Assembly (NCBI GenBank): GCA_973895155.1
Contig: CCZZQB010000056.1
Location: 1-34,484, forward strand
Length of the DNA stretch: 34,484 bases
From: Marsupella aquatica
Lineage: Eukaryota; Plantae; Marchantiophyta
Reading direction: 5' to 3'
Shown here piece after piece: positions 1 to 34,484 of the stretch. The notes under the pieces are model-generated. The model saw only the letters and a program-made list of their open reading frames with translations, was not told the DNA's origin and ran no database searches. Both the position numbers and the translations under genes were made by a program. How positions within the stretch are numbered: position 1 is the first letter of the stretch; the number at the start of each line of letters is the position of its first letter.

Positions 1-702
1 CAACAAATATTGGGAGTGACAACATTACAATTCATTCGAAAACTTTTGAGTGCATTGTTTGTTGCTCATTCTCCATTTCAAAGAGGCGAGGGGAAAAAAG
101 CTTTTGACAGCTTCATGACAGGATATGGTCCTTGGAATAGCAGTTACATGGGTGGCCGTTTGACTTATTACACACACCAGAAGAAGATGAATACCATTTT
201 CGATGATTGCCTTGATGTCAAAGATTTTGAGAAGTGGATCGATAAATATTCACATATTGAACTTATGGATATTATATTGGGGCTTTATATGTGGTGGTGC
301 CCAGAGATGATAGAGTGTTTTTTGGAATACTCTCATCCGTACTTACTATCATCTGATGGTGACAAATATCATGGAAGTGAAGAGCAGATAGGGGAGAATG
401 TTAGACCTAGTACTTACCAATTATATATAAGTGAGGATTATTGTGTGCAAACACATGCTGATGATGATGCAACTGACTTCACCTTAGCGTATGCTAGTCA
501 TCCTGACCATTTCCTTTCAGCAATCGATTTTGTAATTCCAGAGTATGGAATTCGATTGCCAATTAGAGATGGAAATCTATTTGCATTTCGGAGCGATGTT
601 GTTCATGGTACAGGCTTTAGAATGAAAACATCGAATCCTGCATATGTTGGAGCTATTACCGTGAATAAAAACCTCAGCAGACTGATGCAAAAATTACATT
701 AA
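1..702 (+). CDS. TET/JBP-like Fe(II)-dependent dioxygenase, paralogue A (5' part lies outside the window)
   Basis: Frame 1 is open from base 1 (QQILGVTT...) to TAA at 700-702. HAD is at 454-462 and the distal His (VVHGT) at 604-606, in the beta-strand pattern YQLYISEDYCVQTHADDD...DFVIPEYGIRLPIRDGNLFAFRSDVVHGT. By hand count it is 44/95 identical, ungapped, to the C-terminus of 11671-13113. Confidence 0.75.
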   Translation, partial: QQILGVTTLQFIRKLLSALFVAHSPFQRGEGKKAFDSFMTGYGPWNSSYMGGRLTYYTHQKKMNTIFDDCLDVKDFEKWIDKYSHIELMDIILGLYMWWCPEMIECFLEYSHPYLLSSDGDKYHGSEEQIGENVRPSTYQLYISEDYCVQTHADDDATDFTLAYASHPDHFLSAIDFVIPEYGIRLPIRDGNLFAFRSDVVHGTGFRMKTSNPAYVGAITVNKNLSRLMQKLH

Positions 703-10438: not shown

Positions 10439-11291
10439 TTATAAATCAAATCTTCTCCCCACACTTCAGGGACTTTGCAATCTGTTCCAACGCAAAGGAC
10501 CCTGGTGAGCTCAGCTCAACTCAGTGGGGCCGCAGCATAAGTAGAAGGTCCTTCATTGATCTTCTAGCTCCCAACACTTCAGGCACTTTGCATGAGTCTC
10601 GTCGTAGTAGTACGTACCCGTAAATTGTGGCGCTTGATTCAATTGTTGAGTTATATGGCATTATGGAGCTTTACTTCTCCTTCTCAACAAGCGGGGTTGC
10701 ACACCAACTTTGCCACAACACTTGCTACCACCCATCAACAAGCTAGTTGATTTTGAGCACAACCTTTACATGGTATGCTTCTTAGTTGGTATTTTTGAAA
10801 TGTCTTTTAATTGGAAGTTCACACCCATTGATTCAGTCCTTAGATTGATTTTTGGTAGGGTGCAGCTCATATAGAATTAGTGATACAATGATTGTTTCTT
10901 TCACGTTCCTAACCTCACAGAGTTTACTTTAGTCTCTTTTGGATACCCTGTTACAATCTACAAAGTAGTTATTTGCTTTTAGGTAAACATTTGTCTTGCA
11001 TGTCATTTGTACTTTGCTAGGTTGGAAGTCTAAATGCTAACACTTTGGCAACAATAGGTTCCAGTTTCCTATGTTAAATGTGTACAGTCAGAAGGGAGCC
11101 AGAGTATATTCTTAAGGGCTTTTGTTCTTCAAGGACTTACTGCAAGCAAGTGAAACTTGTTAGTTAAGTACAAGCTCATTTTGGCATTAATTTGATGTTT
11201 GTTTGCAATCAGCTCAAGTTGCTACGTGGAGCCCCAAATACTAACCTAGAAGTTGGGAAATCATACTTGAATTTCGTTTATTTTCTCTAAG

Positions 11292-11670
11292 GTGAGTTCC
11301 TACTATCATTTATTTGTTTTAAGTATAATTCATGAAGGACATGGAAAAATAAAATAAAGCAAAGAAAATATAAGTATTTTAAAACAAATATTGACTATAT
11401 TTTTCTACTTATTATCTTATGAATTTGCCTAACATATGTATTATAAAACTAAACAATTGACTTTATTTTGAAATATATATCTGGCATGCTTTTCTGATTA
11501 TTGTTATTTAATAGTTCCAGATAGTTTGGCCGGAGATATGTATTTTGAAATATGTATCTGGCATACTTTTCTGGTTATTGTTATTTAATAGTTCCAGATA
11601 GTTTGACTGGAGATATGTATTTTGAAATAAATATCTGTATAAATTAAAGTATGTTTTTGGAATTTTTCAG
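11292..11670 (+). other. Probable 5'-UTR intron of the dioxygenase gene, containing a 77-bp tandem repeat (11464-11640)
   Basis: Donor AAG|GTGAGT at 11292, a very AT-rich interior, and acceptor TTTTTCAG|ATG directly at the start codon. TATTTTGAAA recurs at 11464, 11541 and 11618. Confidence 0.6.
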
Positions 11671-13113
11671 ATGGCAAAACGAAAGTTTTGGAAAGTGAAC
11701 AAACAAATGAAGGAAGATGGCAAATATGAGTATGAGAAAATGAAATTTGCAATGGACGTTTTCATTCAAATTTTTTCAGCGATCATGATATTGCATCCAC
11801 GTTCACAAAAGTTTGCCATGTTATTTCTTCTTCAAGAAGATAATATTTTTCAAGCATTTGTACAAAATGTATTGAATATTAAACATACTGTATCGAAAGC
11901 AATGATATATAATGCTTACTATAGATTTAAAGAAATTGGACCACCAAAAACCTTTACTTCTTGCGCATGGGAGAATATCTGTGATATTCTCGATCATCAT
12001 TATTCTTTAGATTCAGTACCCTATAGTATAAGAAAATACATCCATTTTCTTAGGTCATCTACCTATATTGAAGAGTGTGTAAAAAGAGAAAAAAATATGC
12101 TAGAGAAAAAAGAAATGGTGTTTGAAAAAATTATTTCCCAATTTTGGTGGGGAAATGTGAATCCAATGGAATTAGTGCAAGGATTTTGGGGAAGAGTTGA
12201 TGATGAAGGTGAATGTTTTTATCGCTTAGAATTAGAAAAAACATTACAAATACTTTCTAGAAGAAAAAACAAAGGGAAAGAAATTGAAATTGAAGAGGCA
12301 CCTATATATAGGGAGCTTCCAATTTCTTACGTTGAAATCCAAAAAACAAAACAGGTTACGGAGATCTATGATAAAATCTCAAGTGAGCTAGTGGGTATCC
12401 ATATTCGCCCTAAAGATGTTCATAAATCTTTTACTATATTGATACGAACTTATCTTAAAGATCTTTTTTGTGCTCATCCAAGTTCAAAAAGATCTAAAAC
12501 TAGAGCATCCTATATGAGTGAAATGGTGGGGTTCGGTCCATTTCACCATACATGGACACCTGGAAAAAATGTTACATCTTTCTACACTCATAGTAATAAG
12601 TTAGTAAAAGCTTCAAAACCTTTAAAAGATTTTGGTAGATTTATTGATCGATTTGCACATGGGGCTGTGGTAGAAATTTTAATGTCTATGTGGTTTAGAT
12701 ATTATCCTACGTTATTACATACTTTTCTTAGATGTTGTAACCCTTACTTAGAAACTTCCCAATATATTAAGGAAGGTGTTGAGATACCATTTTTTGATAA
12801 GCACATGAAGAAGGGACCTCCTGCTTATCAACTATTCATTACTAGAGATTATTGTTCACGTTTTCATGTGGACAATGATAGGACAGAGTGGACACTAGCA
12901 TATACTAGTCACCCTGATGAACATATTTCACCAGTTGATTTTGTATTTGCCAAACATGGATTTATATTACCTTTGCATAATGGTGATTTATTTGCATTCA
13001 AAGGCAAACATCTCCATGGTATGGCTTTTAGAAAACCAACAGAAAATCCTGCATATATTGCAGCTTTAGTTATGAATAGTGGCTTAGGACAATTATTAAA
13101 TAGAATAGAGTAA
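11671..13113 (+). CDS. TET/JBP-like Fe(II)-dependent dioxygenase, paralogue B (480 aa)
   Basis: Intact ORF. H399-V-D401 is at 12865-12873 and H449 at 13015-13017. The 50-residue His-to-His spacing matches Naegleria Tet1 and trypanosome JBP1. It also has the DFVF..HG..LPLHNGDLFAF strand pattern and an upstream MVGFGP motif shared with paralogue A (MTGYGP). Confidence 0.78.
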   Translation: MAKRKFWKVNKQMKEDGKYEYEKMKFAMDVFIQIFSAIMILHPRSQKFAMLFLLQEDNIFQAFVQNVLNIKHTVSKAMIYNAYYRFKEIGPPKTFTSCAWENICDILDHHYSLDSVPYSIRKYIHFLRSSTYIEECVKREKNMLEKKEMVFEKIISQFWWGNVNPMELVQGFWGRVDDEGECFYRLELEKTLQILSRRKNKGKEIEIEEAPIYRELPISYVEIQKTKQVTEIYDKISSELVGIHIRPKDVHKSFTILIRTYLKDLFCAHPSSKRSKTRASYMSEMVGFGPFHHTWTPGKNVTSFYTHSNKLVKASKPLKDFGRFIDRFAHGAVVEILMSMWFRYYPTLLHTFLRCCNPYLETSQYIKEGVEIPFFDKHMKKGPPAYQLFITRDYCSRFHVDNDRTEWTLAYTSHPDEHISPVDFVFAKHGFILPLHNGDLFAFKGKHLHGMAFRKPTENPAYIAALVMNSGLGQLLNRIE

Positions 13114-15385
13114 ATTAGATATGTTTCAGGTATCATGAAACAAACTTTAATGTATCTTTTTAGAAACAATTATGAAATTTATTAAATATGTATTTAATAT
13201 TTGGACCAATTTAGTTTAGGATTGTAATTGTAATATAAATACTTATGTTTGACAAAATCTTTATGTATATTGACTTACTTTAGAAAATAATTTACAACTC
13301 TTATAGCTCTAGAAGTTAATAGGCCTAGGGTAGAGTAGGTAAAATCTATAAGGCAAAACTAACACACCCAAATAAATCAAAATTATCCCACCTTATGTAG
13401 ATAATTTGCGTAGCCAGAGGCCTTTATTGGGTCAGCCTACTCAGGCACCAACTATATATGCAGCCCAAATGCCAACTCTACAGTCCAAATAGGTTAATTG
13501 GCTAGTTAATGCTACAAACTTTCCATGACCTTGGGTGGAGGGTTTGAAGACCTTTGGTGGAGGGCTTGAAGGGGTTTAGGGAGATTTAAACCAAGGAGAA
13601 GTAGGGCAAGTTTCGGGATGTGTTTGTATTTCAGGTGTCTGATGCTCATAATTAGACCATCCTCAGTCCAAGCGGGGACATTAAAACTCTCCTTCTCAAT
13701 TAAAAGCCTGTGATGCAGCAGGCTATGAATGGGCTATGACCATAGAAAACACATTAGAAATTGTCAGAATTGCAAATCAAAGACAATGTCCAACGTCATG
13801 GTTGTAAATCAACGTTGTTTTTAGGCACAAAATAAGCATCAACTCTGCGCTGCCCTATCCTGTGCTTTACTGCTCTCCATCCATGGCCGTTCTCAATTGA
13901 AGAAGCATCGAGACGATCAACCCAGATGTTTAGAGAAAAAGGAGGCATACTCTGTACTATGATTACTGCTTCTTTATTACCGGTCGACTACTGTCAATCC
14001 ATATTTGATGCTACATGTTTTGCAGCACAAGAGCTCTCCTTAGGGTCACTGTTTGTTAGTGTCATCCATGCCTCCCGGGTAGTAGATGTGCTGTGTGTTG
14101 ATCTCCTGAACGGGGCGCACATTTGGCATAAGCCGCAGGAACATCACAAACCAAAAGTCCGTCATATCATTTCGATTGCACCAATTTCATTTGATCAGGG
14201 TTAACTCTTCAATTTGATAACAGGCTCCATAACTACCAACCAGAAGCCAAGTGTCAATCTCTTCTTGTGAAAAACAAGTGAATGCTCACCTCAAGGGTCT
14301 TGCCGTCTCCACGACTGTAGCGTGGGCAGAGTGGTAGTAAATTTTGGCAGAGACATCCACGGTTCCTCGTCGATGTCTACGGAGCTCTGGTTGGCTCCCT
14401 CGCTGCATTTGTTCCATTCTCTAGACAACTCTCCCTAGTGAGCAGGCCCATTGGGCCCTTCACTATAATCTCATTCGATATCTGGACCGACACAAGACCC
14501 CCCAAAAATCAATGATGTGTGGAACCACTATGGCATTGAACTCGAACCGAGCTTTGATGGTGAGTACGCTCTGCAAAGTCTGAAGAAAAGAAGTTTACTG
14601 TGAATGTACCTGATTTGGTCAGCACAGATTGTAAACCAGATGAAAATAGCCCCGAGAGGTTGGACTGTCGGACAGGGGCCGGGGGCTGTCGTCTCTTAAT
14701 GCTCTCAAAATTGTTTCACTCTTTGGTGAATTATAGGTGAAGCAAGATACAACACAGAGTCCTCAAGAGTATTTTGAGCCTGGTCCAATGTGAGCTGGAA
14801 AATCGCTTGGTTCCGTGGGGGCAAAGTAGAGTAATGTTATTAGTTAATAGAGGATTTAGACGGTTATCATATGCTTCAATTGTTACGAGCTTATTTGCAT
14901 TAGACAAGCACAAAGAGAGCGTTGCAAATGGTCTCTCGCTTAATTCTTTGGCAAAAACAGAGTCAATTTTGACTATCATATATTTTATTCTGAGGTTTGG
15001 TTTTGTTCTCTCTCAATGCGTGATCATCAATGGTTTGATTCACCTTTGACGGTTGTTTCACGAAGACGATTGAAAGTTTATGTATTGAGGTGAATGTGGC
15101 AACCCCAATTGCTCTACAGATCTGGTATTCTGCTGAAGAAACCATTCATGCCGTCAAAACCTGACAAGTCACAAGTTTAGGGTCATCATTTATTTTGGTA
15201 CTGTTGTGAATGTCTGTTTCAAGGAGATTACAATTGAATTTGCTCTCCTGACACAGCAACTGAAGCGCAATATATATATTCCTAGATTAGTTGATCTTGA
15301 ACGCAAAAGTCTCCTTTTTGGATAGCCTACATGTTCAAATGAAACAGAAACAAAGGGTACGTAGTTTGAGACTCTAGATCATAGA

Positions 15386-17229: not shown

Positions 17230-17263
17230 GACCCCAGTTGCCACCATGATTTCACAACCCTTC
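17230..17263 (-). repeat. 34-bp exact copy of helicase coding sequence (18959-18992)
   Basis: GACCCCAGTTGCCACCATGATTTCACAACCCTTC is identical at both loci and encodes KGCEIMVATGV (around helicase motif V). Confidence 0.9.
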
Positions 17264-17911: not shown

Positions 17912-20900
17912 TCACCGAAATTCAGGATACTTGATCCTCACAATGGTTGCTACAAGACGCATAAAATTGTTGCCCAGAGCCTCAGGACTTGTAGACACAA
18001 CCCATTCACACAGCTCCTGGTCACTTTTCCCTTTGATTTCAGGAATTGCTCGGAATAAATCGCTCTGTATGTTATCAAATCGCCATGCCTTCCACACAAA
18101 AAGCCGCAATCTCTCTCCTGATTCATCTTCACACTGATCTCCATACAGCCCTTCATGAAATCTCATCCCACTAGGCTGGTGTGGGAAGTGACACTTGAAA
18201 CAAGTGTCTGGTCGAGAAGGAAACTTGTTATCGCAATTTGCACGGTTGTGTGTTCCTAGACACTTCACACATCGTCCCCGTACATAAGGACATTGCAAAA
18301 TACCATGAGGAACACTCTTTGAGAGGGGACTCCAACACATCAAGCACTTTTTCCTATCCCCAGCAAATTTACGGATGATACAAATCTTATTCATGGCTTC
18401 GTCAATTCTTTGTTTGATGAGTGTTGGTCGAGCTCTTGCCACAACCGTGGTTGTGGTTCCTTTGCCTTGGGATGATCCGAGTGATGATGCTGGTGTTGTT
18501 CTTTCACCTGGTGCTGTAACCCTAACACTCTGTCCTCCTTGTATGTTTTGGGAGATGCTCCCCTGAGATACAATTTCAACCACTTCTGACCTAGCTTGTG
18601 ATAATTCTTCGGCCTCATATTCCATTGGTAGTTCCTGATTGTCTGCTGCTTGGGAGCATATGTCACAAGGAATTGCATCCGGGATGAGGTAACACATCTG
18701 TGGCTTACCATCAACGCTAGCATGTAGTGCAAAGCGACGACACATTTTTGTCTCCTCAATCCATTTGTTTGGAATCTTGAAGTTGGAGTCCATCCTCAAG
18801 GCCTCATTGCGGTAGCTGGAGTTAGAAACAACAGTGCTTATTGCTAATAAACCATCACGCCCAGCTCGGCCAGATTCCTGATGAAATTGCTCAAAGGACC
18901 TGAAATTACCTCTGTGAATTACAAGTCTGATTGACTTGTAATTATAGCCAGAACCAATGACCCCAGTTGCCACCATGATTTCACAACCCTTCGACTCCCA
19001 CTTCTTCAAGGTTTTCACGGTGTCTGCTGTGCTACATCCTGCATGCAAAAATGTATAGCACAAGTTCCTGGCTTCGAGTAGCTTTGCCATCTCTTGGACT
19101 TCATCTCTTGTTAGGCAATAGACAATGGCCCGGTCATGAACCAGGCTAGATCTCTTCCAATCTTGAAGCTGTCTAACTATTTCTCCATCCATGTCAGGCA
19201 CTTCCACAACCATGTATCGGATGTTTGGCCTAACAGTAGAAGAACGAACCCAATGTAATCTTGAACCCAAAGTCAGTTCGATATCAGATTGTTGTGTGGG
19301 TGGTAATGTCGCTGTTAATCCTATAATTTGACAGGGAACTTTCATTAGAGAAATCAGATTTCTCATTTTTGGACGGAAATGACACTGTAGTGTATGAATC
19401 TCATCAAAAACAATCGAATGCAATCTTTGTGTAGCTTGCAAGTGGTTTGCAAAGACACCAAATGTATCTGAATCAGCTGCAGTCTCGATAGATACAAAAA
19501 CAATTGCAGGTGTTACTCCTATCCCGAGTGCAAATCCACTTGTAAACACAGTGTGACCAATTCCTGCTTTTCTGCATTCAGATAAGTGACCCGATATGAG
19601 AGATTTGAATGGGACTACCACAATCACTGTTTTGTCCATCAATGTGGAAGGGGCCATGAAAATCAATGACTTTCCTGTTCCAGTGGGAAGTACAGTTACA
19701 AAATCCACAGTGTTTTCAATAGCCAAAGCAACAGAGATTGCTTGTTCAGTTGACCTCCACCTTTTGTGACCCAACTTGTGTAGAGCTATGGAAGCTCTTA
19801 TACTTGTGTCGTGACAGATGTGCAGTGCCGAATCAACATCTCCCACAACTGATGTTGATGGTTCTCCATAGGCAGGGCAATAAACAACCCTTGTCTTGCT
19901 TGGAACATGATCAATTTCAAGCTCAATGTCATGACGTGGACGTAGAACAGTAGTGGTTCTTGGAAAAGGATCTAGTGTGACTTCCCTGCAACCTGTTGTT
20001 GAGCTATCCAGATGAATCAATCTTGGGGACTTATCCGAAAGATTAAGCAATGCATGCCACTTATCTGTAAATATTCGGAATGCTCTCAAGAGATGTCCAT
20101 CAATAGCTCTTAAATCTTTTACACTTTGAGCATAATGATGTCCCATTGTAGCTGTTGTATGTCCACCTGCCACATCTACAATATCATCAAGATCTTGAGT
20201 GCGTTGGTCTCGAATCTTTTCTGAAAAAAATGCTGCTAGGTGTCGGTATTCTGAAAGCCCGAATGTGACTCCACAACGCTTAAAGAAATTGTTGTGTATG
20301 CTCTTGGAAAGATCATGTGCATCTTGCTTTTTATCCATATCAACGAACCAACAATCATCATAATTACGGGCAACCTCCTTTCCCCATATTTTCTGTGCAA
20401 CATAAGATTGTGTAGGCCTCACCAAACAAAAGTATACCAGAAACAGAGTTCTTAAAGAACTTGGAAGAAACCGTATAAGTGGTTTCATTGGAGCACCTGT
20501 ATTTGCACCTTTATGATAGGTTTGAAAGAGCGCTATTGTATGATGCTCTAACAATTTTGTTGTTGGATCATCATCTGGGCCTGCTGTTGCCCAATAAAAT
20601 GACCTCTCGCTTGTGGCTGTGTTGCGAATCAAGAAACTGTTGTACTCTTCGCCCCTTGCTGGTAGACCGGCAGTGAAATGTATAAGCAGATTCAATTTTT
20701 CTTGTAAATCAGAGCAAGCAGTCATCCACTTATAAAGTGTGATATCATTCCAAATGACATCATTTCGATCTGTCCGCCCGAGAATAAAGTGTCCTCTAAT
20801 CTTAGGATCAACAAACAAGTGTGTTAGTAGATCGAGGCCATGTTGCTGAAGAATCCGGTTGCGAGGATCTATGACAAAGTTGTACCCAACTTCTGTGTTG

Positions 20901-22873
20901 TTGACATCGTCGTAAATAGCACGACTCTCCTTAAGTAATTTGTCAACCCAATCTGTTCGGAGACCAAGAAGCACATCACAATTTAAAATTGAGTGGGCTT
21001 CTTGAATAATAGCATGCACCATATCTCGAAAATTGTCGATTGTAATAGATTCACCATCAACTAGACATGCTGTATTATTGGCATTCAATGGTACTAGTCT
21101 TGGCCATACTGGAGTCCCTGCAGTAATCCTATTTGCCAAGCGCAGAGATTGCGATACAATAGTAAATGGAGTAGGTAGTGCTATGTCACTTAAATATTGA
21201 AGAAGTCGATCAACTTCTTCATTAAGAATGGTGCTTGGGTTTTTATGCCAAAAACATTGTGCAAGGTGCATCAAAATGGTCACCCTAGCCCAATATTTGA
21301 GTATCGCCATTGGTTGTGTAAGATGACGAACATGCCAAAATGAATACTCTTCTGCTTCTGGACTGTGGCCAACTTTTATGAGTGAATGTAAAATAAGAAA
21401 CCGAGTGAAAATACAGTTCGCTGCTCTTCCTGCTTCAAGTGTTGCAGGCATCTTTGGAGTCCAAAGATGAATCAACACATTATGTAGAACAGCTAAATCA
21501 ACATTGTCAATAGAATTGTCATCTAATTCATTGAGTTGACTCATGAATTTTTGAAGAGCAATTTCCATTTCTTCTCTGTTTGTTTGAAAAACATGAATGT
21601 CCGAACTAAGCTCATTAGAAGATGATCGAAGCAAGCAGAGAATGAATTCTGTGATTATATCACAGTACCTACTCCTTGATGATTTTGAGTTCAATTGATT
21701 GAATCCCACTGCAACATCATCATTGATATTTGTCTTCTCCACTAGTCTTCTCAATCTGTAATCCACCTCTTTAAGAACCAAATCTTGTACATTGTTCATG
21801 TAGATAGTCACCACTTGACTGACATATGAGAGTGGAGATTTGCCCTGCTTTGGTGGTGGGAGCATCTGTGCTTTCACCTGCAAAAATGGTACCCCTTTTG
21901 GCATGAATTGGGCCGCAAGCTCATGCCATTTAGACTGTGCTAGCCATGGAGTTAGCTCAGCAATTGGAGGTAGAAGTTCTAACCGCAAAGACTGAAAATG
22001 GTCATCAAACTCCTTTGTGATTATAGCCCTCAAACTTTTAGATTGCAAGTGACAGTCATCCCCATCGAGATTGAGATTGTGATGTTGAACACCAAAGTAT
22101 TTGAGGCCTATAACACGATCTGAGAGGATTTGAACTTGGCATTCACTCTTCACATTGACATAGGACAACTCAGGATGTTTTCTCAAACGATGATTGGACA
22201 TTGACCTTTTCTCCCCACAATAGTAGATGCATTGTTTGCAAGAAAAGCCGTGTCGAATGACAACACCTGGTACTGGAGAAAGCAATGCAGCTGGTGGATC
22301 TCTTGTATATGGTAATATGGATGTATCATCCATGCTTGTAAAAGAGAACTGTTGTAAGCTCCTCAATAGTTGATGACTGTCGTAGTCTGATGCTATTCGA
22401 TGACACCTTGATTTCTCCCGTTGATGCTTTTGAACATGATGAATGATATTGATATTTTCATTGTATATGAGTACCGAATGACACTCTATACATACAAGGA
22501 AAACCAATTCCTCATGACGAACAACGCAGAGATTAACACTTCTCAAGATCTCTGGTGTACCAGAATGATCTGGTGTAATGCACAATCCTTCATTAACCGC
22601 CAAGTCGTGTGGATCAACAAATCTTTCGACTTGATTAACATGGATTGTGTCATAGTGTCGGCGAAGACTATCGCCACGTGTGTAATACTGAGAACACATA
22701 TTATCGGGGCATGCGAACATCCCATTTTCAGACTTGTGGAGGATCTCCACAGTGCCATCGCAATGCTTGAATTTGAACGTCATCCTGTGCTCAAAACGTT
22801 TGTGAGCATCTCTTGCTCTTGCTGATTGAAAAATCTGCTCACACGCACTACATGGAAAAATGGTTGTCTCCAT
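17912..22873 (-). CDS. Telomere-linked-helicase-like protein: C2H2 + DUF3505-like Zn region + tyrosine-recombinase-like domain + RecQ-family helicase + C-terminal Zn knuckles (1653 aa)
   Basis: Intact, uninterrupted ORF. Helicase motifs are LPTGTGKS (K1068), VVVPFKSL, FDEIH (1156-1160), LTATLPP, VATGVIGSG and HQESGRAGRDG, plus the RecQ Zn motif CRR...C...CDIC. N-terminal C2H2 fingers are CSAC..H...H and CPDNMC..H...H. DUF3505-like motifs are LVCIEC...HVQKH and GFSCKQC...H...H...CQVQ...YFGV. The central region has TAGLPARGEE, YHK, SEYRH and GGHT...HHY. Confidence 0.88.
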   Translation of the reverse strand: METTIFPCSACEQIFQSARARDAHKRFEHRMTFKFKHCDGTVEILHKSENGMFACPDNMCSQYYTRGDSLRRHYDTIHVNQVERFVDPHDLAVNEGLCITPDHSGTPEILRSVNLCVVRHEELVFLVCIECHSVLIYNENINIIHHVQKHQREKSRCHRIASDYDSHQLLRSLQQFSFTSMDDTSILPYTRDPPAALLSPVPGVVIRHGFSCKQCIYYCGEKRSMSNHRLRKHPELSYVNVKSECQVQILSDRVIGLKYFGVQHHNLNLDGDDCHLQSKSLRAIITKEFDDHFQSLRLELLPPIAELTPWLAQSKWHELAAQFMPKGVPFLQVKAQMLPPPKQGKSPLSYVSQVVTIYMNNVQDLVLKEVDYRLRRLVEKTNINDDVAVGFNQLNSKSSRSRYCDIITEFILCLLRSSSNELSSDIHVFQTNREEMEIALQKFMSQLNELDDNSIDNVDLAVLHNVLIHLWTPKMPATLEAGRAANCIFTRFLILHSLIKVGHSPEAEEYSFWHVRHLTQPMAILKYWARVTILMHLAQCFWHKNPSTILNEEVDRLLQYLSDIALPTPFTIVSQSLRLANRITAGTPVWPRLVPLNANNTACLVDGESITIDNFRDMVHAIIQEAHSILNCDVLLGLRTDWVDKLLKESRAIYDDVNNTEVGYNFVIDPRNRILQQHGLDLLTHLFVDPKIRGHFILGRTDRNDVIWNDITLYKWMTACSDLQEKLNLLIHFTAGLPARGEEYNSFLIRNTATSERSFYWATAGPDDDPTTKLLEHHTIALFQTYHKGANTGAPMKPLIRFLPSSLRTLFLVYFCLVRPTQSYVAQKIWGKEVARNYDDCWFVDMDKKQDAHDLSKSIHNNFFKRCGVTFGLSEYRHLAAFFSEKIRDQRTQDLDDIVDVAGGHTTATMGHHYAQSVKDLRAIDGHLLRAFRIFTDKWHALLNLSDKSPRLIHLDSSTTGCREVTLDPFPRTTTVLRPRHDIELEIDHVPSKTRVVYCPAYGEPSTSVVGDVDSALHICHDTSIRASIALHKLGHKRWRSTEQAISVALAIENTVDFVTVLPTGTGKSLIFMAPSTLMDKTVIVVVPFKSLISGHLSECRKAGIGHTVFTSGFALGIGVTPAIVFVSIETAADSDTFGVFANHLQATQRLHSIVFDEIHTLQCHFRPKMRNLISLMKVPCQIIGLTATLPPTQQSDIELTLGSRLHWVRSSTVRPNIRYMVVEVPDMDGEIVRQLQDWKRSSLVHDRAIVYCLTRDEVQEMAKLLEARNLCYTFLHAGCSTADTVKTLKKWESKGCEIMVATGVIGSGYNYKSIRLVIHRGNFRSFEQFHQESGRAGRDGLLAISTVVSNSSYRNEALRMDSNFKIPNKWIEETKMCRRFALHASVDGKPQMCYLIPDAIPCDICSQAADNQELPMEYEAEELSQARSEVVEIVSQGSISQNIQGGQSVRVTAPGERTTPASSLGSSQGKGTTTTVVARARPTLIKQRIDEAMNKICIIRKFAGDRKKCLMCWSPLSKSVPHGILQCPYVRGRCVKCLGTHNRANCDNKFPSRPDTCFKCHFPHQPSGMRFHEGLYGDQCEDESGERLRLFVWKAWRFDNIQSDLFRAIPEIKGKSDQELCEWVVSTSPEALGNNFMRLVATIVRIKYPEFR

Positions 22874-23599: not shown

Positions 23600-25070
23600 T
23601 GGTTGTAGATTGGGTTAGGAAATGTGGGTTGTGGCATGGGTTTAGGGTCTTATGTTGGGAGTTGAGAAAGACTGGAGTTACAAAATTTGGTGTGGTGTTG
23701 GGGCTGAGGGGGTTGGGAGTTGTGTGTTGGGGATTGAGGGGTTGTGGGTTCAAGGGGAAGTTGTGTCTTGGGTTGGGTAGGTTGAGAGTTGTATGTTGGG
23801 GAGCTTGGTTGCAGATTGGGTTAGGAAATTTGGGTTGTGGCATGGGTTGGGGGAGATGTGTTGGGGGTTGAGAAAGTCTGGAGTTAGGGAGTTAATTTGT
23901 TGTAGAGTTGGGTGTTGGGGGTTAAGGGATTCATTTGGGGAGTTGTGTCTTGGGTTGGGTAGGTTGAGAATTCTGTGTTGGGAGTTGAGTAAGTTGGGGA
24001 GTTTGGTTGTAGGTTAGGTTAGGAAATGTGGGTTGTGGCATGGGTTGGGGGAGATGTGTTGGGGGTTGAGAAAGTTTGGAGTTAGGGAGTTAATTTGTTG
24101 TAGAGTTGGGTGTTGGGGGTTGAGGGATTCATTTGGGGAGTTGTGTCTTGGGTTGGGTAGGTTGAGAGATTTGTGTTGGGAGTTAACACAGTTTGGAGTT
24201 ACAAAATTTGGTGTTGTGTTGGGGTGTGAGGGGGTTGGGAGTTGTGTGTTGGGGATTGAGGGGTGTTGGGGATTGTTGGGTGTTGGGGGTTGAGGGATTG
24301 GAAGTTGTGTCTTGGGTTGGGTAGATAGATAGTTGTATGTTGGGGGTTAAGGGAGTTGGGGAGTTATGTGTTTATCGGTTGAAGGAGTTTGGAGTTTGGT
24401 TGTGGGTGGGGGTTGACATTGTGGGTTGGGGGAGTCGTGGGTTGGGGATTGAGGGGTTGTGGGTTCAAGGGGAAGTTGTGTCTTGGGTTGGGTAGGTTGA
24501 GAGTTGTGTGTTGGGAGTTGAGTGAGTTGGGGAGTTTGGTTGTGGGTTGTGGCATGGGTTGGGGGAGATGTGTTGGGGGTTGAGAAAGTCTGGAGTTAGG
24601 GATTTAATTTGTTGTAGAGTTGGGTGTTGGGGGTTGAGGGATTCATTTGGGGAGTTGTGTCTTGGGTTGGGTAGGTTGAGAGATTTATGTTGGGAGTTGA
24701 GAAAGTTTGGAGTTACAAAATTTGGTGTAGTGTTGGGGGGCTGAGGGGGTTGGGAGTTGTGTGTTGGGGATTAAGGGGTTGTGGGTTCAAGGGGAAGTTG
24801 TGTCTTGGGTTGGGTAGGTTGAGAGTTGTGTGTTGGGGGTTGAGTGAGTTGGGGATTTAATTTGTTGTAGAGTTGGGTGTTGGGGGTTCAGGGATTGGAA
24901 GTTGTGTCTTGGGTTGGGTAGGTAGACAGTTGTATGTTGGGGGTTGAGGGAGTTGGGGAGTTATGTGTTGGAGGTTGAAGGAGTTTGGAGTTTGGTTGTG
25001 GGTGGGGGTTGACATTGTGGGTTGGGGGAGTTGTGGGTTGGGAGTTGCCGGGGAAGTTGTTTGTTGGGAT
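23600..25070 (+). repeat. G/T-rich modular minisatellite with telomere-like strand bias
   Basis: The 20-mer TTGTGTCTTGGGTTGGGTAG occurs at 23761, 23943, 24141, 24305, 24476, 24655, 24798 and 24902 (spacing 104-198 bp), mixed with other recurring modules. The plus strand has very few C. Confidence 0.92.
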
Positions 25071-26273: not shown

Positions 26274-28091
26274 TCACGACACCGGTGGTGGATCCTCAAT
26301 GGACGCCCCCAACGCTCCCTCCGCAACCACTGCCGTTGGTCCGTCCTCTGACAGATTACCTGCCTCTGACCGAGTCAACTTTTCATTGGCCTGACTGGGC
26401 CCACCCTCGGCTTCGGCTTCGGCTTCAGCTTCGGCCACGGCCTCCAACACGGCTACAGTCTCCCCGGCCTGCTCAAGAGGTGGATCTGGGATACCGGCCT
26501 CATTATTGAGAAGTTCGGCTTGGGCCGCGCCATCCCCACCTTTGGTGATAGTGGGATCTACTACCGCATTCATGCTGGAGGTTGGTACCGGTTTTACTAC
26601 AGCTTGAGGGGTCGAATAACCTCCGGACCCCGAAGGTTTCCGCTTCTTCTTCTTCACTACCTCTATAGCCGGTTCCTTCCCCTTGCCGCCAACGTCCGGC
26701 ACCGGGCCGTGTGTCATGGCTGGTCCTTCGGCAATTACCACCCCTAGTAACTGGTTTGCCCCAATGGGAGATGGACCTGATGCAGCTAAGCATTTAAATA
26801 CTGCGGCTTGTTTCTTCAGCCGCTCTGTTTGGTTGTCGGCCCGCCGCTGTAGGTTCTCCATCTTCCTCGTGACTTCCTCCAACTCCTCCTGGGTCTCATC
26901 CAGGTCCTTACGTGCCTCCTCCAGCTTGTTCTTGGCTTCCTCCAATTCCCTGTGGGCTTCCTCCAATTCCTTCTTGGTGGTAGCCCTCTCCTCCTGGGTT
27001 GCTCTTAGCTCCTTGTCGAGCTCCGCTACGACCTCAGACTCCATGTTATTCATCTTGGCATAAGTCTGGTCGAGCTGGGCGTCCTTCTCCCGCAGGTTGG
27101 CCTTGAAGCTGGCCGTCAAGGACGCAAGCTCCTGCTGTAGCGCAATAATCCCTTGATAGGATTTCCCTAACTCAGCCTCCTTCTGCTCAAGGGCTCTGTG
27201 GATGACCTCGAGCTCCCCCTTCAACGCCCTCTCCCTTCTCTGAGTCTCCGCCGTGACCCGGTTATTGGCTGCTATATGGGCCTCCTCTGCGTCTCTCAGC
27301 TCCTTCTTCCACTTCTCCCTCTCCTTGATTGCGTCGGCCAATGCTCCCTGGGTCTAAGTCAGTTTATCCTTGATAATCTGATTATCAGCCTGCGCGGTAT
27401 CCAACTGCCCCTGCATGATGTTCAGCTCATGCCGCTTAATCCGCAGTTCATCTTGGGCTTTCTTGGCCACCCTTAGATCTTCAATCTCGGCTTCCATCCT
27501 CCTAAGCCGCCGGATGACCTCGTCCTTCTTGCTTCTCTCTAAAGCCACCGCTTCTTCTAATTGGTGCTTCTCTAACTGCTCCCTCTGGAAAAAGGGTCCT
27601 ACCTCCAACTCCTCCCCAAAGATGCTGAGCGCAAGTTCCCCACACATCTCACCATAATCCATGGCTCTATTTTTAGCGTAGGTGGAGTAATTAGAAGTGA
27701 TCGGCATTGCCCATCGCGGCCTCTGCTCCCAAGCCATCTTGCGGATCTCTTCAATCGTGGCTAGAGGTTTGCTTCCTTTTTTGGCTAGCCGCCTGATGTC
27801 CTCCGGCCAATCTCCTCCTGGCAAATCCTTTTCCCTAGCCAGGGCTGCCTTTTCTGCTTCCCTAAGTCGCTCCTGAAATTTCTATGCCGTCTGCTTTATG
27901 CCGTCAAATCTCGGGGGAGCAACATTTGGTGGGGGAGACTTGGGAGGGTGTGGACGAGGTATATTTGAAGTTGGCAGAACTAGGAGACCATTTGTACTGT
28001 TGCTATATGGCTTAGTTGTATATTTTGGAGTGCACTGCTTGTATGGATCTCTAATTTTAATGGAGACACGAGCAGCGCTGATTTGTCTCAA
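26274..28091 (-). pseudogene. Coiled-coil protein reading frame (about 606 codons) broken by two in-frame TAG stops; probably transposon-associated
   Basis: ORFs 28091-27882, 27824-27354 and 27341-26274 share one frame and are separated only by TAG at 27884-27882 and 27356-27354. Strong heptads (ELEEAHRELEEAKNKLEEARKDLDETQEEL), a KKKKRK basic patch and an acidic low-complexity tail. Confidence 0.7.
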
Positions 28092-32610: not shown

Positions 32611-34484
32611 AGGGTTTAGGGTTTAGGGTTTAGGGTTTTTAGGGGTTTAGGGTTTAGGGTTTAGGGTTTAGTTTAGGGTTTAGGGTTTAGGGTTTAGGGT
32701 TTAGGGTTTAGGGTTTTTTAGGGTTTAGGGTTTAGGGTTTAGGGTTTAGGGTTTAGGGTTTAGGGTTTAGGGTTTAGGGTTTAGGGTTTAGGGTTTAGGG
32801 TTTAGGGTTTAGGGTTTAGGGTTTAGGGTTTAGGGTTTAGGGTTTAGGGTTTAGGGTTTAGGGTTTAGGGTTTAGGGTTTAGGGTTTAGGGTTTAGGGTT
32901 TAGGGTTTAGGGTTTAGGGTTTAGGGTTTAGGGTTTAGGGTTTAGGGTTTAGGGTTTAGGGTTTTAGTTTTAGGGTTTAGGGTTTAGGGTTTAGGGTTTA
33001 GGGTTTATGGGTTTAGGGTTTAGGGTTTAGGGTTTAGGGTTTAGGGTTTAGGGTTTAGGGTTTAGGGTTTAGGGTTTAGGGTTTAGGGTTTAGGGTTTAG
33101 GGTTTAGGGTTTAGGGTTTAGGGTTTAGGGTTTAGGGTTTAGGGTTTAGGGTTTAGGGTTTAGGGTTTAGGGTTTAGGGTTTAGGGTTTAGGGTTTAGGG
33201 TTTAGGGTTTAGGGTTTAGGGTTTAGGGTTTAGGGTTTAGGGTTTAGGGTTTAGGGTTTAGGGTTTAGGGTTTAGGGTTTAGGGTTTAGGGTTTAGGGTT
33301 TAGGGTTTAGGGTTTAGGGTTTAGGGTTTAGGGTTTAGGGTTTAGGGTTTAGGGTTTAGGGTTTAGGGTTTAGGGTTTAGGGTTTAGGGTTTAGGGTTTA
33401 GGGTTTAGGGTTTAGGGTTTAGGGTTTAGGGTTTAGGGTTTAGGGTTTAGGGTTTAGGGTTTAGGGTTTAGGGTTTAGGGTTTAGGGTTTAGGGTTTAGG
33501 GTTTAGGGTTTAGGGTTTAGGGTTTAGGGTTTAGGGTTTAGGGTTTAGGGTTTAGGGTTTAGGGTTTAGGGTTTAGGGTTTAGGGTTTAGGGTTTAGGGT
33601 TTAGGGTTTAGGGTTTAGGGTTTAGGGTTTAGGGTTTAGGGTTTAGGGTTTAGGGTTTAGGGTTTAGGGTTTAGGGTTTAGGGTTTAGGGTTTAGGGTTT
33701 AGGGTTTAGGGTTTAGGGTTTAGGGTTTAGGGTTTAGGGTTTAGGGTTTAGGGTTTAGGGTTTAGGGTTTAGGGTTTAGGGTTTAGGGTTTAGGGTTTAG
33801 GGTTTAGGGTTTAGGGTTTAGGGTTTAGGGTTTAGGGTTTAGGGTTTAGGGTTTAGGGTTTAGGGTTTAGGGTTTAGGGTTTAGGGTTTAGGGTTTAGGG
33901 TTTAGGGTTTAGGGTTTAGGGTTTAGGGTTTAGGGTTTAGGGTTTAGGGTTTAGGGTTTAGGGTTTAGGGTTTAGGGTTTAGGGTTTAGGGTTTAGGGTT
34001 TAGGGTTTAGGGTTTAGGGTTTAGGGTTTAGGGTTTAGGGTTTAGGGTTTAGGGTTTAGGGTTTAGGGTTTAGGGTTTAGGGTTTAGGGTTTAGGGTTTA
34101 GGGTTTAGGGTTTAGGGTTTAGGGTTTAGGGTTTAGGGTTTAGGGTTTAGGGTTTAGGGTTTAGGGTTTAGGGTTTAGGGTTTAGGGTTTAGGGTTTAGG
34201 GTTTAGGGTTTAGGGTTTAGGGTTTAGGGTTTAGGGTTTAGGGTTTAGGGTTTAGGGTTTAGGGTTTAGGGTTTAGGGTTTAGGGTTTAGGGTTTAGGGT
34301 TTAGGGTTTAGGGTTTAGGGTTTAGGGTTTAGGGTTTAGGGTTTAGGGTTTAGGGTTTAGGGTTTAGGGTTTAGGGTTTAGGGTTTAGGGTTTAGGGTTT
34401 AGGGTTTAGGGTTTAGGGTTTAGGGTTTAGGGTTTAGGGTTTAGGGTTTAGGGTTTAGGGTTTAGGGTTTAGGGTTTAGGGTTT
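32611..34484 (+). repeat. Terminal telomere, (TTTAGGG)n, about 267 units
   Basis: Continuous TTTAGGG to the end of the window with the G-strand on +. Variant units occur only in the proximal about 450 bp. Confidence 0.99.

Follow-up and report, generated by a model that had tools for sequence, protein, structure and literature searches.

Introduction

Fungal Tet-like dioxygenases (PF20515, 2OG-FeII_Oxy_6, and PF12851), such as Coprinopsis cinerea CcTet (PDB 7VPN, 7W5P, 8JKK), stand in the TET/JBP superfamily beside animal TET1-3, Naegleria NgTet1, the kinetoplastid thymine hydroxylases of base J synthesis JBP1 and JBP2, and Chlamydomonas CMD1, a vitamin-C-dependent 5-methylcytosine (5mC) glyceryl transferase (PDB 7CY4-7CY8). 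In fungi, TET/JBP genes are transposon cargo, and a survey of these transposon-borne genes does not mention plants (PMC12730594). TET homologues have not been identified in plants, where nothing is known of TET/JBP genes (PMC11233409), and CMD1-like proteins seem to be restricted to a few green algae (PMC11066809, PMC11065753). Our literature search found no description of a land-plant TET/JBP gene, and reports of 5-hydroxymethylcytosine in plants are contested. An abstract from 2014 reportedly mentioned that some Viridiplantae had acquired fungal TET/JBP genes by lateral transfer, in which case the presence of such a gene in the green lineage would not be wholly unprecedented. Here we analyze a 34,484-nt contig of Marsupella aquatica (CCZZQB010000056.1; the whole stretch is called the window below), in which an intact open reading frame (ORF) of 480 codons would encode an active Fe(II)-dependent dioxygenase from a rare and very divergent branch of this superfamily.

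The 480-codon gene and its relatives

The ORF starts with ATG and runs through 480 codons to a stop. As the first-pass annotation of this DNA had claimed, it is intact and carries H399-x-D401...H449, with the codons of the three residues at 12865-12867, 12871-12873 and 13015-13017, and its length lies far beyond chance. The ORF is AT-rich (GC 0.32; GC at third codon positions, GC3, 0.23), so stop codons should be frequent in it; the stop-free run around it nevertheless spans 495 codons, whereas the longest run in 2000 Markov shuffles of the AT-rich surroundings reached 164. From base composition, 480 open codons would arise with a probability of ~2e-18. Both termini of the 480-amino-acid (aa) protein align with the full-length relatives P0001 (449 aa), P0004 (427 aa) and P0014 (457 aa), the alignments starting close to the N-terminus and sharing the C-terminal end, and no coding exon is visible upstream of the ORF. 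The gene thus probably consists of a single exon and is complete, resembling the fungal Tet-like genes, which are also intronless and a few hundred codons long. A GT...AG pair at 11293/11670 could mark an intron in the 5' untranslated region.

An exhaustive scan with phmmer, covering 1.84 billion cluster representatives (E <= 1e-3), found 33 relatives of the protein, the best of them with an E-value of 9e-55 and 35% identity. In a family alignment (alignment A2), H399 and D403 are each conserved in 28/28 sequences, D401 in 27/28, H449 in 23/23 and R274, an Arg far upstream of the triad, in 16/16. At ~35% overall identity, the invariance of the triad, D403 and R274 is strong evidence for a selected and catalytically competent protein. 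The 50-residue spacing of the two His residues, to which the first-pass annotation had also drawn attention, is real and identical to that of CcTet (H326/D328/H376; PMC11040006), but it is a poor discriminator alone, since many double-stranded beta-helix oxygenases have a similar one; what gives it meaning is the conservation of the triad across the relatives. The family is best read as a new, rare and divergent TET/JBP branch that escapes the Pfam Tet models and appears to lack a defining canonical feature, the last-strand Arg described below.

The relatives come from short contigs of the runs SRR18067351/435/441/545 and SRR33208268/280 and from environmental metagenomes. The contigs of five of them (0.7-4 kb each) carry no telomere repeat, no informative neighbor and no DNA similarity to the window. 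When the protein, the family profile and the helicase encoded elsewhere in the window were used as queries, a word-indexed homologue search returned nothing or P0025 alone, and scans of metagenome and viral contigs with two family sub-alignments found no relatives. On contig L007 (SRR33208280), a 154-aa ORF (3-467) directly precedes the 146-aa C-terminal fragment P0006 (484-924), and a frameshift or an assembly error may have divided a single family gene into these two.

The window itself contains a second member of the family, a paralogue that is cut by the window edge. It is 35% identical to the 480-aa protein over 226 aa (BLASTP, E 1e-50), retains the HxD motif and the distal His, and is 72% identical to P0019, which comes from another sample, over the compared C-terminal stretch. 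A tblastn search of the window revealed no copy beyond the gene and this paralogue.

Structure prediction and fold searches

Prediction with AlphaFold from the single sequence gave an unusable model (predicted local distance difference test, pLDDT, 34), and the 33-row alignment was used as input instead. The resulting AlphaFold (AF2) model has a pLDDT of 80.9 and a predicted template modeling score (pTM) of 0.79, and it divides the protein into an N-terminal helical domain, a linker and a beta-rich catalytic domain (Table 1). In a Foldseek search against the PDB, the first 11 places are all taken by CcTet chains (E 6e-7 to 3e-5), followed by CMD1, FTO, TET2 and NgTet1. VIA-align places TET2, CMD1 and NgTET1 above AlkB, with aligned lengths of ~200-245 residues compared with ~170. 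Among the matching AlphaFold Database (AFDB) clusters, many of them unnamed, several fungal ones are labeled 'Tet-like 2OG-Fe(II) oxygenase' and two '2OGFeDO JBP1/TET'; the top 11 of the Swiss-Prot fold search are JBP2 (E 4e-8), Schizosaccharomyces pombe Cif1 and JBP1, and the ESM Atlas returns the same Tet/JBP families by language-model features and by shape. A TET/JBP-type fold and an intact iron centre are well supported, and the assignment reaches the TET/JBP superfamily, not any described subfamily.

The Pfam scan of the 33 members points in the same direction. Only two families recur: PF20515 (Tet-like 2OG-Fe(II) oxygenase) is matched by 5 members, with E 0.0014 at best, and PF12851 (Tet_JBP) by 2, with E 2.9e-4 at best. 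Both remain below threshold (12-19 bits compared with gathering cut-offs of 27 and 34.9), and none of the 33 members matches AlkB, prolyl hydroxylase (P4H) or 2OG-FeII_Oxy. The TET/JBP-like identity proposed in the first-pass annotation is thus borne out by fold, the best profile and fold matches being Tet-like rather than AlkB, prolyl hydroxylase or small-molecule oxygenases. Membership of the AlkB family was considered and rejected: AlkB and FTO rank below TET/JBP in every library, with the shorter alignments given above.

The protein also differs from each of its described counterparts. CcTet is the best structural match in both the PDB and the AFDB, but the sequence match to it is not significant, and unlike in fungal Tet-like proteins the catalytic domain is preceded by a conserved 215-residue N-terminal region made up of the helical domain and the linker. 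Sequence similarity to CMD1 is undetectable, and the solved CMD1 chains comprise ~860-870 residues compared with 480 here. Unlike TET1-3 and NgTet1, the protein has no Cys-rich or CXXC domain. JBP1 and JBP2 are the best Swiss-Prot fold matches, but the 480-aa protein ends with its catalytic domain, 31 residues past H449, and Pfam finds no J-binding or SNF2 helicase domain in it.

Active-site residues compared with canonical TETs

In canonical enzymes, an Arg on the last strand, 9-15 residues past the distal His, binds 2-oxoglutarate (CcTet R385, TET2 R1896, NgTet1 R289; PMC7854593, PMC11040006), and the R385A substitution abolishes the activity of CcTet (PMC11040006). Residues 456-477 of the 480-aa protein contain no Arg or Lys, and A461 occupies the position aligned with this Arg and thus with CcTet R385. 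In the sequence alignment, Arg is found at this position only in the outgroup members P0025 and P0030, and the main clade has Ala, Thr, Val or Ser. The nearly invariant N469 follows A461 by eight residues, just as the base-contacting residue, a His or an Arg, follows the last-strand Arg in CcTet (R385 to R393), NgTet1 (R289 to H297) and TET2 (R1896 to H1904). By this spacing, the last-strand R...F/Y.H motif of TET1-3 and NgTet1 would read A...V.N here.

Other candidate active-site residues are strongly conserved. The co-substrate site follows a two-Arg rule, with TET2 R1261 and CMD1 R244 as the upstream Arg (PMC7854593). The invariant R274, which precedes the HxD motif by a similar number of residues, is a candidate counterpart of these two, and R454 (H449+5) is nearly invariant in the close subfamily. 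D403 stands at HxD+2, not +3, one residue earlier than the position that reads cytosine N4 (NgTet1 D234, TET2 N1387, CMD1 D350), and is a candidate base-edge contact. Taken from the alignment, the iron chemistry appears to be kept, while the last-strand co-substrate and base contacts appear to be remodeled. CMD1 retains the last-strand Arg (R410) that is absent from the 480-aa protein, but in CMD1 this Arg turns away and ascorbate replaces 2-oxoglutarate (PMC7854593). Such remodeling of the pocket can accompany new chemistry; extending this to the 480-aa protein is analogy only, and its use of ascorbate would be pure speculation. With the iron site kept and an Arg lost whose mutation kills CcTet, the family may offer a naturally occurring test of alternative co-substrates in the superfamily.

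Representation of the locus in sequencing runs

Logan contigs of four runs, carrying two organism labels, cover the gene, the ORF lying entirely within one contig of 2172 bp in the two runs with the best resolution. The depth over the ORF matches that of its flanks (~121, 197 and 300-470 in the runs concerned); one run lacks most of the ORF, but only 57% of that run was read. The uniform depth over the ORF and its flanks in the four DNA runs shows that the locus is real, single-copy and a genuine component of this genome, and it is not a recently active element. Three ORF variants occur among the runs, two synonymous and one I258M. A fifth run, with a third organism label, shares 17% of 31-mers, as would be expected of an orthologue that is roughly 95% identical.

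Two further observations concern the contigs of these runs. In all four, the contigs break at ~11527-11576, inside the 77-bp tandem repeat upstream of the gene (Table 1). In run X4, a minor contig (depth 12 compared with ~370) joins 10446 to 13027 with 'TA' between them, and thereby omits 2580 bases, most of the gene among them. The junction has only 23 letters on its shorter side, so the contig may be artefactual or may represent a rare deletion allele.

Subtelomeric setting and mobile elements

The window ends in a true chromosome end, and the gene lies 19.5 kb from its TTTAGGG repeat, in agreement with the subtelomeric position that the first-pass annotation had claimed. Within the sequence, this plant-type repeat is the one feature that points to a land plant, as the first-pass annotation had it; TTTAGGG is also found in green algae, oomycetes and several alveolates, and fungi generally use TTAGGG telomeres. 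The gene sits in a 2.6-kb AT-rich island, and CpG is depleted across the whole region (observed/expected ratio, o/e, 0.43-0.58), as expected for germline-methylated DNA. A giant-virus origin of this island is without support, the viral and metagenome contig scans having found no relatives. The only other recognizable gene in the window, besides the dioxygenase and its paralogue, lies ~10 kb from the telomere and encodes a telomere-linked helicase of fungal type. The ESM Atlas clusters closest to this helicase (scores 0.99 and 0.98) have exclusively eukaryotic members, of which the single one of known phylum is a basidiomycete.

No terminal inverted repeats (TIRs), long terminal repeats (LTRs) or target-site duplications were found around the gene, and Pfam detects no transposase domain in the scanned ORFs of at least 95 aa in the window. 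A linkage to a KDZ transposon is therefore unsupported. Unlike for the TET/JBP cargo of fungi, no KDZ, hAT or IS3EU transposase was found linked to the gene, and the gene stands near a telomere of the TTTAGGG type. Base J is enriched at telomeres, and the telomere-proximal position of the gene recalls it; the analogy to JBP and base J drawn in the first-pass annotation nevertheless finds no support beyond the fold, since the J-binding and SNF2 domains were not found, and unlike in the base J system no glucosyltransferase partner is seen in the window. An Rfam scan of the window matched no family, no diagnostic plant gene was found among its scanned ORFs, and a look-up of the 480-aa protein returned no identical record.

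Proposed function and alternative explanations

By analogy with its nearest structural neighbors, the family probably modifies nucleic-acid bases, and DNA-base oxidation is the most likely function of the 480-aa protein, a view that we hold with moderate confidence. The enzyme would probably flip a methylated base out of duplex DNA and oxidize the methyl group at its iron centre, with 5mC as the most likely target and thymine or N6-methyladenine as possible ones. Because the co-substrate pocket appears remodeled while R274 and R454 remain, the enzyme may bind 2-oxoglutarate in another way or use a different co-substrate. A CpG-depleted subtelomeric site beside a telomere-linked helicase would fit the marking or de-silencing of subtelomeric DNA. 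We also consider a bolder proposal, in which a plant-lineage family of active TET/JBP-fold dioxygenases without the universal 2-oxoglutarate Arg writes an oxidized or adducted base on subtelomeric DNA, possibly with a co-substrate other than 2-oxoglutarate as in CMD1; this is tentative and, taken as a whole, somewhat unlikely. If the host is a plant, the family would provide a concrete, clonable candidate for the enzymatic oxidation of 5mC or thymine outside the DME/ROS1 glycosylase route. Whatever the host, it would form a deep and rare TET/JBP branch, with 33 representatives among 1.84 billion proteins.

Several results weigh against assigning an active DNA-base dioxygenase to this gene. No sequence model is significant: the 480-aa protein alone matches nothing in Pfam or among the PDB sequences, and the family profile has a single, spurious match to USP16 among the latter (P0025 and P0015 likewise retrieved nothing useful from the PDB). 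The Pfam Tet_JBP search that the first-pass annotation had proposed thus gave no match for the protein itself, while the sub-threshold matches of its relatives go to Tet families and no others. The TM-scores of the fold matches are modest (0.3-0.45), with a margin over AlkB of ~2 Z units. At the active site, the canonical 2-oxoglutarate-binding Arg appears to be replaced by Ala (A461), and the aromatic base-stacking position (+6, two residues before N469) is Val, as placed by motif spacing only; these equivalences derive from alignment and spacing rather than structural superposition. In addition, a search for RNA runs returned only the same four runs, which are DNA-like, with a flat intergenic depth and no splice joint.

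Alternatively, the fold may have taken on another role, with the iron centre oxidizing RNA, protein or a small molecule instead of DNA bases, in line with the apparent replacement of the canonical co-substrate Arg and of the aromatic stacking residue. FTO, AlkB-type RNA demethylases, ACC oxidase and gibberellin oxidases all appear in the fold lists at E ~1e-4, and Pfam finds no recognizable DNA-binding domain in the 480-aa protein. However, DNA-base dioxygenases come first in every library and have the longest aligned lengths, and the family's sub-threshold Pfam matches are confined to Tet families; we consider a substrate other than DNA rather unlikely. The loss of the 2-oxoglutarate-binding Arg, together with the presence of Cif1 among the best Swiss-Prot fold matches, would also suit a catalytically dead regulator like this S. 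pombe protein, which keeps the TET/JBP fold but not the chemistry. Such a regulator is very improbable here, as the three iron ligands are invariant across the family, which is unexpected once catalysis has been lost.

Two further explanations concern the origin of the gene rather than its chemistry. It could be an intact but functionless relic, the cargo of an extinct mobile or telomere-linked element that has been silenced in heterochromatin and has no host role. The transposon-borne TET/JBP genes of fungi (PMC12730594), the AT-rich and CpG-depleted island that the gene forms in the subtelomere, the adjoining telomere-linked helicase and the failure of the search to find an RNA run are all in line with this. 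We nevertheless judge a relic quite unlikely, because no TIR, LTR or transposase was found around a gene that is single-copy by depth, a 480-codon ORF in DNA of 32% GC would not stay open without selection, and the catalytic residues are invariant among relatives at ~35% identity. The least probable of the explanations is that foreign, for example fungal, DNA was wrongly joined to the assembly, as the fungal nearest fold and feature neighbors of the dioxygenase and the helicase and the departure of the local GC content from that of the flanks might suggest. A single contig spans the ORF in the best-resolved runs, the depth is approximately even between gene and flanks in four runs with two labels, and the long telomere that terminates the contig is built of TTTAGGG, not of the TTAGGG that is general in fungi; given this even depth and terminal telomere, contamination is unlikely. 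An active, divergent TET/JBP-type dioxygenase, most likely acting on DNA bases, is thus the explanation that we prefer.

Feature coordinates and minor observations

The positions of the gene, its predicted domains and residues and the other features of the window are collected in Table 1.

Table 1. Features of the window, with positions counted from its first nucleotide
Feature	Position	Strand	Evidence or remarks
C-terminal half of a paralogue, cut by the window edge, in the same orientation as the 480-aa gene	1..702	+	BLASTP
AT-rich island around the gene, GC 0.26-0.36 compared with ~0.45 in the flanks	10800..13400	.	ORF GC3 0.23; CpG o/e 0.43
77-bp tandem repeat, 2.3 copies, 92-94% identical, ending 34 bp before the ATG	11464..11637	+	
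Intact, probably monoexonic gene, 480 aa, predicted divergent TET/JBP-fold Fe(II) dioxygenase	11671..13113	+	ORF listing, chance test, 33 relatives, alignment of termini
Predicted N-terminal helical domain, aa 1-146	11671..12108	+	AF2 model, pLDDT 88-96 over aa 20-130, all helices; conserved in P0001, P0004, P0009 and P0020; no family assignment
Low-confidence linker, predicted disordered, aa 147-217	12109..12321	+	pLDDT <50; relatives align poorly
Predicted catalytic double-stranded beta-helix domain, beta-rich, aa 218-480	12322..13110	+	
R274, invariant upstream Arg, 125 residues before H399	12490..12492	+	16/16 in alignment A2
H399-V-D401-N-D403, two putative iron ligands and an invariant Asp	12865..12879	+	Alignment A2
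H449, putative distal iron ligand	13015..13017	+	23/23 in alignment A2
R454 (H449+5) to A461	13030..13053	+	A461 aligns with the canonical last-strand Arg
Telomere-linked helicase, 1653 aa, intact ORF (DEAD, Helicase_C and OrsD)	17912..22873	-	Pfam E 1e-16, 3e-15 and 3e-7
Telomere, (TTTAGGG)n, ~267 copies	32611..34484	+	G-rich strand 5'->3' to the window end

Several smaller features lie outside the gene. A 236-bp tandem repeat (1595-2258; 2.8 copies, 81% matches) is located ~0.9 kb downstream of the paralogue. Between the helicase and the telomere, the interval 23700-25050 consists of G-rich degenerate minisatellites with periods of 17, 22, 31, 104 and 198 and units such as GTGTTGGGGATTGAGGG, where the GC skew reaches up to 0.9; these minisatellites look like decayed telomere-like repeats. 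A GC-rich stretch (0.53-0.57) follows on the reverse strand at 26274-27824, containing ORFs of 355 and 156 aa whose Pfam matches are weak and of coiled-coil type only (ATG16, Snapin). An exact 34-nt direct repeat has one copy inside the 3' part of the helicase ORF (18959-18992) and the other ~650 bp downstream of that ORF (17230-17263).
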